Below, in pieces: positions 56,845 through 58,947 of a DNA stretch of 64,000 nucleotides. The position numbers and the translations under genes were made by a program. The stretch lies in the sequence record NC_061450.1; one strand, given 5' to 3'. Within the stretch, counting starts at the first letter, position 1, and every line of letters starts with the position of its first letter. The notes below the pieces were generated by a model. The model worked only from the letters and a program-made list of their open reading frames with translations, did not search any database and was not told the DNA's origin.

Positions 56845-57273
56845 GTGACTCGAATGAATGAACGCCAGAAACACGAAGCACGTAATTCAGACCCATACGA
56901 TTGGCACAACCTGGAAATTGATATCACCAAGCTGTTGTTGCTTGCCGAAGATAAAAGAAAGTCTGTGGTATTTGCACCGATGAACTTATTTCCCAAGTTC
57001 ACCGAGTACAACAATCTAGGCTACGTGTTGCACCAGCTCAATGATTTTCGTCTGAGTTCTTTAATGACTGAAAATGAGCGAATCAAAGGTCACTGGATTG
57101 CGACTGACGGTGATCATCTGGACTACGTTATTTTTCTGCGTCTGCCAGATGCAAACACCGAAGTAGATGTGTTTGACCCGCGTGACAGAGAGTTGGTCAA
57201 GGGGCGTATGCTTTCTCCTACCTTCCTGTGTATGCCTGAGAACTTCGATCTGTTTAAAACAGAAAGCCGCTAA
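56845..57273 (+). CDS. Hypothetical protein
   Basis: GAGGAG RBS, GTG start. Confidence 0.75.
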   Translation: MTRMNERQKHEARNSDPYDWHNLEIDITKLLLLAEDKRKSVVFAPMNLFPKFTEYNNLGYVLHQLNDFRLSSLMTENERIKGHWIATDGDHLDYVIFLRLPDANTEVDVFDPRDRELVKGRMLSPTFLCMPENFDLFKTESR

Positions 57274-57330: not shown

Positions 57331-57840
57331 ATGAGTGAGACTATGAACCACCAGTTTGATGACGAGTCGCAAGTTGCAATCAACACCGCTGTTCAGGAGG
57401 TGCGCAACATTCTTGCCGAGACACCTGTGGCTCCAATTGATATCGCAATTGCAGGTGCTCGTGTTTATCTGACAGTTGCCGAGCATCTTGGTGGTCACCC
57501 GCTTGATGTGCGTTTCGTACATGACAACAAAATTGTTAGCATGGCAATGCGTGTTACTACCGTGCCTAGTGACCAAGAGTTCGAAGCCAACGGCATTAAC
57601 ATCGAACATCAAAAGATGTTGACGATGGCTATCATGGATGGATTCGACAAGGCTGTTGAACTGGAAGTCATCAGCGGTTATGAGCAGGGCGCGATGTTTG
57701 TTGCTGCCTTGCGTGTGTTGTATATGGGATTGGTTGAAGACCCAAGTGTTAAGGAACTTAGATTCCGACACAGCCAGAAAAACAACGTGATCAACATTTT
57801 AAATCCTGCCAGAGGAAACTCCGAAAATGAGAACGGTTAA
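57331..57840 (+). CDS. Hypothetical protein
   Basis: GAGGAG RBS. Confidence 0.8.
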   Translation: MSETMNHQFDDESQVAINTAVQEVRNILAETPVAPIDIAIAGARVYLTVAEHLGGHPLDVRFVHDNKIVSMAMRVTTVPSDQEFEANGINIEHQKMLTMAIMDGFDKAVELEVISGYEQGAMFVAALRVLYMGLVEDPSVKELRFRHSQKNNVINILNPARGNSENENG

Positions 57841-58015
57841 CGATATTATCAAGGTGCTGAAAGAGCAGCGAGTAGTTACCATCCCACAGAGTCAGAGCAG
57901 CATTGTTCCTGACCTGTGCTTCACACTTGACGTGTGGTGCATTCCTCACCGTCGTCGTGATGTAGACAGCTTACAACATGGCCGTCAGGTGCGTATTGAA
58001 CTGCGGAATAGTTAA
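57827..58015 (+). CDS. Small hypothetical protein
   Basis: GAGGA RBS, 62 aa. Confidence 0.55.
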   Translation: MRTVNDIIKVLKEQRVVTIPQSQSSIVPDLCFTLDVWCIPHRRRDVDSLQHGRQVRIELRNS

Positions 58016-58102
58016 GCAGCGTTTGGCCCAGCAATTTGGGCCATTCTTTTAAGTGTTGTTCAAGACAGCATTTAGACGAATATTAACCTGCTATCAGAAT
58101 CT

Positions 58103-58155
58103 ACAAATACGTGGACAAAAGACGCGTTGTATCACGTTACTGATTGTGAGATAAT
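58103..58155 (+). promoter_or_regulatory. Promoter with conserved upstream box, copy 8
   Basis: ACAAATACGTGGACAAAA-6nt-TTGTAT-17nt(TGA)-GATAAT. Confidence 0.7.
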
Positions 58156-58161
58156 AGACGT

Positions 58162-58374
58162 GCAGTATGAGACGTGAGGAATCGTACTGTAATTGACTGA
58201 CAACTCTTTGGGCGTACAATCGGCCATCAACATTCCTGTGATTGTACGCTCCTTTTTCAAGTGGCTTTGAAGTTTAAGGCTACTTGCGAAAGGGTTCGAT
58301 ACCCTTTGAGCGCTGCCGGATTTACGCGGTTTTCACCGACAGTGCTCTCATGCTAAACCGCAAAGGAAATAACC
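58162..58374 (+). ncRNA. Candidate structured leader / ncRNA with T-loop hairpin and pseudoknot
   Basis: Five hairpins read by eye; TTCGATA loop on AAAGGG/CCCTTT stem; GCGGTTT loop complementary to AAACCGC next to RBS. Confidence 0.55.
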
Positions 58375-58947
58375 ATGCCAGAATTACGCAAGCCTCGTCC
58401 AGCAGATAAATTCTCTCAGGCACGCGCTGCAAAGAACTCTCCTGAAAGGCAAGAAGCCGCTGCGCAAAAGAAAATCTCACGCGGGCCTAAAGCATCTGGT
58501 CCTCGTCGCAATGCTATGCAGTTAGAATCGCCGACTAAGATTCGCGATGAAGAACGTGTGTTGAATCTTGTGCTGTTTATTCTACGCGGCTGGAAACAAG
58601 CAAAGGCTGATAGTGAAGCCAGCGCCTCACAGGGCATTATCAAAGTGAGTCGCAAGGAAATTGAAATCGCATTGCGTGATCTTAAAAACACGCGCTTCAC
58701 TAAAATCCCGACGTTGATTAATGACGTGCTGGTCTATAACGAAATCGTTGCCGAGTTCGGACAGTGGGTGTATGTCGAGCACGACCATCCAGACTGGATG
58801 TTCATCTTAACGCCTCCGAGTGAGACGTTGGTAACGCGCTGCCGCATTCGTCGCAACAAAGAGACAGGCGACCTGACGCAACTTATTGCAAGTGAAGCGT
58901 TGCTGCCTGTAGAGGACGAATATGAAGAAGACGAGGAGAAAGAATAA
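58375..58947 (+). CDS. Hypothetical protein (basic N-terminus, acidic C-terminus)
   Basis: AAGGA RBS. Confidence 0.8.
   Translation: MPELRKPRPADKFSQARAAKNSPERQEAAAQKKISRGPKASGPRRNAMQLESPTKIRDEERVLNLVLFILRGWKQAKADSEASASQGIIKVSRKEIEIALRDLKNTRFTKIPTLINDVLVYNEIVAEFGQWVYVEHDHPDWMFILTPPSETLVTRCRIRRNKETGDLTQLIASEALLPVEDEYEEDEEKE

Follow-up and report, generated by a model that had tools for sequence, protein, structure and literature searches.

The window, i.e. the whole stretch of 64,000 nt that was analysed, stems from Erwinia phage pEa_SNUABM_5 (MW366843.1; Rivsvirus, 267 kb), a jumbo phage of the PaBG/Lu11 group, and window positions correspond to the positions of that record minus 186000. PaBG has been described as encoding its own sigma-70-like factor (PMC7412058). 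The locus of interest is a gap of 359 nt between a gene of 62 aa (57827-58015) and a gene of 190 aa, pEaSNUABM5_00328 (58375-58947), and all genes around it are annotated as hypothetical. The gap contains the terminator of the 62-aa gene (58024-43), a predicted promoter (58112-58155), and a region of 213 nt (58162-58374) that is the structured 5′ leader of the 190-aa gene, an orphan. The promoter, the leader elements and the gene downstream are all on the plus strand. The minimum free energy of the whole leader is −73.7 kcal/mol, compared with a mean of −55.6 kcal/mol for shuffled sequences (z = −3.99), and none of 200 shuffles was as good. The helices that a first-pass annotation had listed from the letters of this region were all found by direct reading of the sequence.

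The predicted promoter is composed of an upstream element, TGGACAAAA (58112-20), a −35-like TTGTAT (58127-32), and, after a spacer of 17 nt, an extended −10 element TG-A-GATAAT (58147-55, with TG at 58147-48 and GATAAT at 58150-55), which would place the start site at about 58161-63. Its class of phage promoters is represented at least seven times in the window, often with a hairpin at the predicted start site; the layout TGCAAAT..CTGGTCAAAAT..TTG..N17..TAnAAT followed by a hairpin is found at six other sites. The promoter is retained upstream of the leader in the relatives, and transcription of the leader would start from it. The predicted transcript begins with the hairpin P0 (58162-70/58182-90; 9 bp, −10.7 kcal/mol). 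P0 occurs with differing sequence in every relative with a leader of the Alexandra/Rivs/Yoloswag type (15 sequences, “group A”), and similar hairpins follow several other promoters of the class. As judged from these patterns, P0 is a generic feature of the promoter class. The length of the leader, by comparison, is exceptional within the class, because the other leaders are short.

Homologous leaders were collected by several approaches. In Alexandravirus, Yoloswagvirus, and Dickeya phage AD1, BLAST searches revealed stronger conservation of the 3′ half of the leader than of the coding sequence, and a shorter piece matches in Salmondvirus (JA11/JA13). In most of the related genomes the DNA match spans the leader and little or nothing of the coding sequence, and the 3′ part of the leader is 85-90% identical. 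A pattern scan of IMG/VR added uncultured relatives, and a profile search of 1.84 billion representative proteins yielded 19 members of the family of the encoded protein; the contigs of eight more distant members were fetched. The resulting alignment, A6, has 25 leaders (24 distinct ones), which represent four phage genera as well as uncultured relatives. Beyond the loci already in the set, a second viral pattern scan retrieved chance matches only, mostly in apparent coding regions of unrelated phages. A metagenome pattern scan for loop and tail gave at least 120 matches, and none of those listed was real after filtering for P4 and the pseudoknot (see below). The scan of a genome collection found a single chance match in Chitinophaga, and a protein-based IMG/VR scan found no genomes beyond the set already in hand.

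The core of the leader is an H-type pseudoknot adjacent to the ribosome-binding site. Its first stem (S1), P4, spans 12 positions with one C·A mismatch (58308-19/58336-47), of which the 8 bp of the first-pass annotation are the base, and it encloses a loop of 16 nt, AUUUAC-GCGGUUU-UCA. The central segment of this loop, GCGGUUU (58326-32), pairs with AAACCGC (58355-61) on the 3′ side, forming the second stem, S2, and the linker L3, UCAUGCU (58348-54), connects the two. In the window sequence taken by itself, the S2 duplex has an energy of −10.5 kcal/mol, and 56 of 2000 shuffled tails (2.8%) were as good, so that the pseudoknot is only moderately unusual on this measure; it is the comparative evidence that places it beyond chance. 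Each of the 25 leaders of A6 has P4 and the pseudoknot. Overall, 92.9% of the alignment cells are standard pairs, and 12 of the 19 pairs have changed on both sides. The respective values are 91% and 9 of 12 pairs for P4, and 95.8% and 3 of 7 pairs for S2, and thus both helices of the pseudoknot that had been proposed from the single sequence are supported by covariation. The covariation score is 0.375, while sliding the 3′ partner by one to three columns reduced pairing to 33-53% and the scores to 0.12 or less. For four of five measures, none of 500 shuffles reached the observed values. In addition, P4 is independently predicted by RNAalifold.

The changes in S2 can be followed in individual leaders, which have GGGGUUU/AAAUCCC (JA11), AGGGUUU/AAACCCU (L036), CGGGUUU/AAACCCG (L037), CUGGUUU/AAACCAG (L039), and GCGAGUU/AACUCGC (L040) at this place. 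Pair 1 varies between GC, AU, and CG, pair 2 between CG, GC, and UA, pair 3 between GC and AU, and pair 4 between GC and GU. The three junction-proximal U-A pairs are almost invariant, and a UUU in loop 1 (L1), which runs parallel to the A strand, is near-invariant. This combination suggests U·A-U major-groove triples. In P4, the basal AGCG/YGCU is invariant, the G·U at pair 5 is mostly conserved, and UUUA in the loop is near-invariant; the UCA at the start of loop 3 is conserved and unpaired. According to a geometric estimate, the 5-6 nt of L1 cross the 7 bp of S2 comfortably, while the 7 nt of L3 are sterically tight over the 12 bp of S1, a crossing that is possible only if they are extended.

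The ribosome-binding site, AAAGGAAAU (58362-58377), includes the SD core GGA (58365-67), a spacer of 7 nt, and the ATG at 58375, and it is nearly invariant across the 25 sequences. The 3′ end of the pseudoknot is 3 nt before the GGA and is separated from the AUG by 13 nt. Counted from the AUG, the 3′ strand of the pseudoknot thus occupies approximately positions −20 to −14, immediately upstream of the SD and within the usual footprint of the 30S subunit. The nested folds of 21 leaders contain no conserved hairpin that sequesters the SD, and therefore any control must come from the pseudoknot. Pairing of the P4 loop with the SD itself was considered and rejected, because its energy of −4.0 kcal/mol falls far short of that of the pseudoknot.

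Between P0 and the core, the leader contains three further hairpins. P1 (stem 58210-22/58239-51) has 13 bp including a terminal G·U, a loop of 16 nt, and an energy of −17.9 kcal/mol, and it is followed by a C and a run of five U (58253-57), so that the whole element spans 58210-58257. A terminator pattern scan did not call it because its loop exceeds the 8-nt maximum of the scan. The relatives have at least five unrelated stem sequences at this place, always followed by CC or CT and TTTT(T), which bears out the earlier description of P1 as a terminator-like hairpin with a U-run. The unusually large loop and the presence of only five U’s indicate that P1 may be a weak terminator. A conserved antiterminator alternative to P1 was not found. 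In group A, P1 probably attenuates transcripts that start at the gene’s own promoter. Two other roles were rejected for this stretch. A sigma-70-like promoter inside P1 (TTGACT-16-TACAAT, 58193-58220) is not conserved, and Alexandra-type leaders have no counterpart of its −10; an anti-SD function of the P1 loop (UUCCU in the window, UUUCC in Alexandra-type leaders) has no basis in pEa_SNUABM_13 and Yoloswag, in which the motif is absent.

P2 (58258-70/58274-86) has 13 bp, of which the 7 bp noted initially are the middle part, a loop of 3 nt, and an energy of −13.8 kcal/mol. Within group A, 91% of the cells are paired, and 4 of 10 tested pairs have changed on both sides. P3, AAAGGG-TTCGATA-CCCTTT (58289-58307), combines 6 bp with a T-loop-like loop of 7 nt, UUCGAUA, and abuts P4 with no spacer. 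All of its cells are paired in group A, and two pairs have changed on both sides, i.e. G-C to A-U in pEa_SNUABM_35 and G-C to U-A in pEa_SNUABM_7. For P2 and P3 together, pairing amounts to 94.6%, with changes on both sides in 6 of 16 pairs; hence, covariation within group A bears out both stems. The sequence of P3 is nearly invariant in group A, and its T-arm form (a stem of 5-6 bp and a 7-nt loop of the UUCRANY type) is kept in most of these sequences. In pEa_SNUABM_7, however, the loop is replaced by CAAAUGU, while the stem is retained via the compensatory change, and the Salmondvirus-type leaders (group B) have unrelated hairpins in place of P3. The T-loop sequence is therefore not a feature of the family. 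Leaders of group B and several uncultured relatives consist of the promoter, one hairpin of unrelated sequence, P4, and the pseudoknot, and lack P1 and P2. Across the aligned leaders, P1 with its U-run, P2, and P3 are thus a lineage-specific module of the Alexandra/Rivs/Yoloswag-type phages.

The protein encoded by pEaSNUABM5_00328 has a basic N-terminus predicted with low confidence, which is likely to be disordered, a conserved alpha/beta core of about 120 aa (pLDDT about 85-93 for residues 55-178), and an acidic tail. Searches of Pfam, PHROGs, and the PDB sequences, as well as a Foldseek search against the PDB, gave nothing significant; the fold matches in BFVD are solely uncharacterised proteins of the same phage group. 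Neither a recognisable RNA-binding domain nor a known fold was found in the protein. Some members of the family have a putative additional C-terminal motif resembling helix-extended-helix, indicated by a weak Ish1/HeH hint in one of them (E = 0.009). Across genera, the proteins are only 30-35% identical.

The linkage of the leader to this gene is strict. In all 25 instances the leader is located upstream of the same protein family, and BLAST always found one leader place per genome. A covariance model built from A6 had one match in 114 kb of the pEa_SNUABM_5 genome, with 97.4 bits, the next best scoring 14 bits; BLAST alone covered the other 150 kb or so. pEa_SNUABM_30 and phB78 have lost the gene by a deletion that also took the P4 loop and the pseudoknot; what is left of the leader hairpins are P1, P2, and a decaying P3. 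The most distant homologue, in OR620964.1, overlaps its upstream gene and has no leader. By these comparisons, the element is single-copy, strictly gene-linked, and lost together with its gene, as an autogenous operator would be.

A search of the whole window against Rfam gave no match at the gathering score, and with the threshold relaxed to E ≤ 10, the sole match of the leader was a chance snoRNA (E = 1.8). Searches of the literature, incomplete in their coverage, did not retrieve an earlier description. The initial proposal of an undescribed structured leader RNA therefore stands, and the element is a new RNA family of an already known kind. On comparative grounds, it is a real, previously undescribed RNA with a putative regulatory function, and it is not a tRNA mimic (see below).

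The function that we tentatively favour, with a probability close to but short of an even chance, is that of a gene-specific translational operator, possibly an autogenous one, which in one lineage is preceded by an attenuator-like terminator. A folded pseudoknot RNA would occupy the 30S footprint directly 5′ of the SD, and the U·A-U triples would give it a compact and specific tertiary fold. A regulatory protein would recognise this operator and hold or block the 30S subunit, and translation initiation of one gene would be controlled in this way. The simplest candidate for the regulator would be the gene’s own product, with its basic and acidic ends. In the Alexandra/Rivs/Yoloswag lineage, a module of P1 with its U-run, P2, and the T-loop hairpin P3 would have been added between the promoter-proximal hairpin and the core, and attenuation at P1 would yield a short RNA of about 95 nt unless the polymerase reads through. 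A protein-recognised translational operator would fit best because the gene linkage is strict, the element is co-lost with the gene and single-copy, and unpaired as well as basal nucleotides are conserved. As the product has no recognisable RNA-binding domain or known fold, the case for autoregulation is made entirely by analogy, by the linkage, and by the joint loss. The tight span of L3, the large loop and short U-run of P1, and the absence of a leader in OR620964.1 weigh against the favoured reading.

With the SD located beyond the pseudoknot, the fold could equally help translation or stabilise the mRNA. A constitutive leader that needs no regulator is accordingly the first alternative: the hairpins and the pseudoknot would protect the mRNA from 5′-end-dependent decay and might maintain the SD in a single-stranded state and help to place the 30S subunit, in the manner of a translational enhancer or a standby platform. 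We regard this as unlikely, yet as a serious contender. The SD and the AUG are unsequestered in the nested folds of the 21 leaders, the 5′ hairpins are generic to the promoter class, and the pseudoknot ends just 5′ of the SD without covering it, all of which is compatible with such a role. On the other hand, elements that merely stabilise an mRNA seldom have invariant unpaired nucleotides and invariant specific pairs across genera in which the proteins have diverged so far, and the other genes of the promoter class manage with short and simple leaders.

The group A leaders could also combine two units, an idea that we consider quite unlikely. The promoter, P0, and P1 with its U-run would then produce an RNA of about 95 nt that stands on its own, as a trans-acting sRNA or as a terminated leader of the lambda pR′-tR′ kind for which a phage antiterminator is required; the part from P2 to the pseudoknot would appear only on read-through transcripts, and P1 would be the main control of timing. 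The P1 hairpin with its U-run is stable and has been kept with at least five different stems, it is still there in pEa_SNUABM_30, which has lost the gene, and the upstream gene of L041 is directly followed by a terminator resembling P1. However, the Salmondvirus-type leaders have the pseudoknot core without P1, which rules out P1 as the core mechanism. Moreover, the loop of P1 is large and its U-run short, no conserved antiterminator alternative was found, and no conserved target in trans is known.

Two further readings make the pseudoknot itself a sensor. In the first, which is improbable, it would be a triplex-type aptamer for a small molecule or ion that is made or depleted during jumbo-phage infection, and the T-arm hairpin of group A might also recruit a host enzyme of the TruB/TrmA type as an RNA chaperone or modifier. 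If this were true, the leader would represent a phage-borne class of riboregulators without a described relative. In the second, which we rate as distinctly improbable, the leader would be a small-molecule riboswitch with a triplex-type H pseudoknot like those of SAM-II/SAM-V and preQ1-II, which is stabilised by its ligand and alters the access of the ribosome. The pseudoknot adjoins the SD, the near-invariant loop UUU and the U-A pairs fit U·A-U triples while other pairs of S2 covary, and conservation of a tertiary appearance extends to L1 and L3. The family has no match among the Rfam riboswitches even at E ≤ 10, however, and the SD lies outside the pseudoknot. Furthermore, the element is found in a single phage clade and solely in front of one family of orphan, non-metabolic genes, and S2 lacks U-A pairs in the most divergent member, L041.

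The first-pass annotation had also interpreted the leader as a possible tRNA mimic or processed tRNA decoy, in which P3 is stacked on an acceptor-like helix of CGCTC (58247-51) and GAGCG (58308-12); this reading, or that of a decayed tRNA gene, is now extremely improbable. P3 does match the T-arm consensus G-UUCGAUA-C, so the observation of a T-arm-like motif was correct, but that sequence is confined to one lineage and is replaced in pEa_SNUABM_7 and in the Salmondvirus-type leaders. The acceptor-like helix is present in the window, but it is perfect only there: across the 15 group A sequences 70.7% of the cells are paired, the central pair is broken in 13 of 15, and no pair has changed on both sides. 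In addition, it is in competition with two covarying helices, P1 and P4. A D arm is missing, and P2, with a loop of 3-5 nt, does not provide an anticodon arm. ARAGORN found no tRNA gene in the window or in four other relatives, and a tRNA match in Rfam is absent at E ≤ 10 for both the window and pEa_SNUABM_13. On the homologous stretch of pEa_SNUABM_13, ARAGORN does call a tRNA-Glu of 95 nt, reproducing the GenBank annotation tRNA-Glu(ttc) on that sequence only. The anticodon of this call is in the U-run after P1, and the annotation is probably a false call. That the conserved stretch encodes a small protein has a next to negligible probability: an ORF of 41 aa with a TTG start (58284-58409) overlaps the leader and Yoloswag is annotated with a CDS of 65 aa there (YOLOSWAG_310, probably a mis-annotation), but the conserved block contains indels of 1 and 2 nt among relatives, the substitutions are paired compensatory changes without a codon-position pattern, and group B leaders have not retained the ORF.

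How jumbo phages of the PaBG/Lu11 group control their genes, most of which are orphans, has hardly been explored. The leader is a rare case in which comparative data alone establish a specific tertiary fold of an RNA, a pseudoknot with probable base triples. The presence of this fold on one orphan gene across four genera implies that the dosage or the timing of the gene matters, and through the leader the gene becomes directly accessible to experiments. Two entries of public records that are probably mis-annotated, the tRNA-Glu of pEa_SNUABM_13 and the CDS of Yoloswag, are corrected, and A6 is ready to serve as the seed alignment of a new RNA family.

Among known systems, the gene 32 operator of T4/RB69, the rpsO pseudoknot operator, and the triplex pseudoknot riboswitches come closest to the leader. 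Like the lambda pR′-tR′ 6S leader and leader attenuators, it has a stable hairpin and a U-run within about 95 nt of a promoter, ahead of a gene; unlike in these, the loop has 16 nt, the U-run has a length of five, the module is missing in part of the family, and no antiterminator structure or factor was found. P3 resembles the tRNA T-arm in its closing G-C pair and in the loop UUCGAUA, which has the equivalents of U54-U55-C56-R57-A58, and it would be a plausible substrate-like hairpin for enzymes that recognise T-arms. In contrast to a T-arm, its context includes neither a cloverleaf nor a conserved acceptor pairing, and the loop is dispensable in pEa_SNUABM_7 and the Salmondvirus-type leaders. 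With SAM-II/SAM-V and preQ1-II, the leader shares an RBS-adjacent pseudoknot and a U-rich loop 1 parallel to the A-tract strand of S2, an arrangement that U·A-U major-groove triples require. It differs from them in that there is no covariance-model match, the SD is outside S2, and the downstream gene is a phage orphan and not a metabolic or transport gene.

The comparison with gene 32 of T4 and RB69, which had been suggested initially, is only a loose one. In both cases a pseudoknot in a phage mRNA leader is located 5′ of the RBS and tied to a single gene, and the protein encoded by pEaSNUABM5_00328 shares a basic N-terminal and an acidic C-terminal region with the gene 32 product. In T4, the pseudoknot has about 28 nt and is located at the 5′ end; downstream of it, gp32 cooperatively coats an unstructured stretch of more than 40 nt, which has UUAAA/UAAA repeats and contains the RBS (PMC535899). 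The layout at the phage locus differs, with 13 nt from the pseudoknot to the AUG, no UUAAA/UAAA repeats, and a stem 1 of 12 bp, and searches of Pfam, PHROG, and the PDB revealed no resemblance of the protein to gp32 or another SSB. The leader thus lacks the defining features of the gene 32-type operator as well as those of the known riboswitch classes. The operator of E. coli rpsO (S15) is similar in that an H-type pseudoknot lies in the 30S binding region and the SD is accessible. At rpsO, sequence from between the SD and the start codon is part of the pseudoknot, whereas the pseudoknot of the leader ends 5′ of the SD, and the leader has no sequence similarity to rpsO and no match in Rfam. 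By analogy to the entrapment at rpsO, a protein bound to the leader could act by trapping the 30S subunit instead of competing with it.

The 62-aa gene is followed immediately, on its 3′ side, by a canonical, short-loop intrinsic terminator on the plus strand of the window (58024-58043; an 8-bp stem, then TTCTTTT), so transcripts from upstream probably end before the leader's own promoter at 58112. This promoter belongs to a class with a shared sequence layout, TGCAAAT-N3-CTGGTCAAAAT, then TTG, ~17 nt and TAnAAT, found at seven plus-strand sites of the window (23467, 26420, 34578, 42550, 56747, 58112, and 59512). Hairpins at the predicted transcript start are frequent 3′ of these promoters. 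This layout may mark a single temporal class, or point to a phage sigma factor or activator. One promoter of the TGCAAAT class precedes a 142-aa ORF on the plus strand (56845-57273), two genes upstream of the 58375 gene. This ORF shows weak similarity to the 58375 protein family (tblastn, E = 0.004 with family member P0004) and may be a distant paralogue.

A further plus-strand promoter match, sigma-70-like (58193-58220; TTGACT-16-TACAAT, 10/12), lies inside the 5′ arm of the terminator-like hairpin P1, which could not form in transcripts begun there. pEa_SNUABM_13 has TTGACT-17-TACAGT at the equivalent position, and the match is not conserved in Alexandra-type leaders.

The 65-aa CDS YOLOSWAG_310 (L006:1428-1625, KY448244.1) overlies the structured leader of Yoloswag, where conservation consists of compensatory pairs and relatives have non-triplet indels, which argues against a genuine gene. 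The 95-nt "tRNA-Glu(ttc)" of pEa_SNUABM_13 (L004:1470-1564, MZ475891.1 241695-241789) is probably a mis-annotation rather than a true tRNA, because its anticodon is placed in the U-run 3′ of P1, Rfam gives no tRNA match for this stretch, and no other relative has a tRNA call on the homologous leader.

In pEa_SNUABM_30 (L007:1470-1600) and phB78 (L009), a deletion has taken out the entire gene together with the pseudoknot and the loop of P4, and what is left of the leader now adjoins the following promoter. These remnants retain intact P1 and P2 hairpins, whereas the T-loop-like hairpin P3 has gained a loop change and a stem mismatch.

The window's 58375 protein is without an extra C-terminal motif that extends some orthologues by ~40 aa beyond the acidic tract (e.g. 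L006:1591-2301, L008:1559-2299, and L002:1599-2324). This motif resembles helix-extended-helix/SAP-type modules, and one member gives a weak Pfam hint of Ish1 (E = 0.009).
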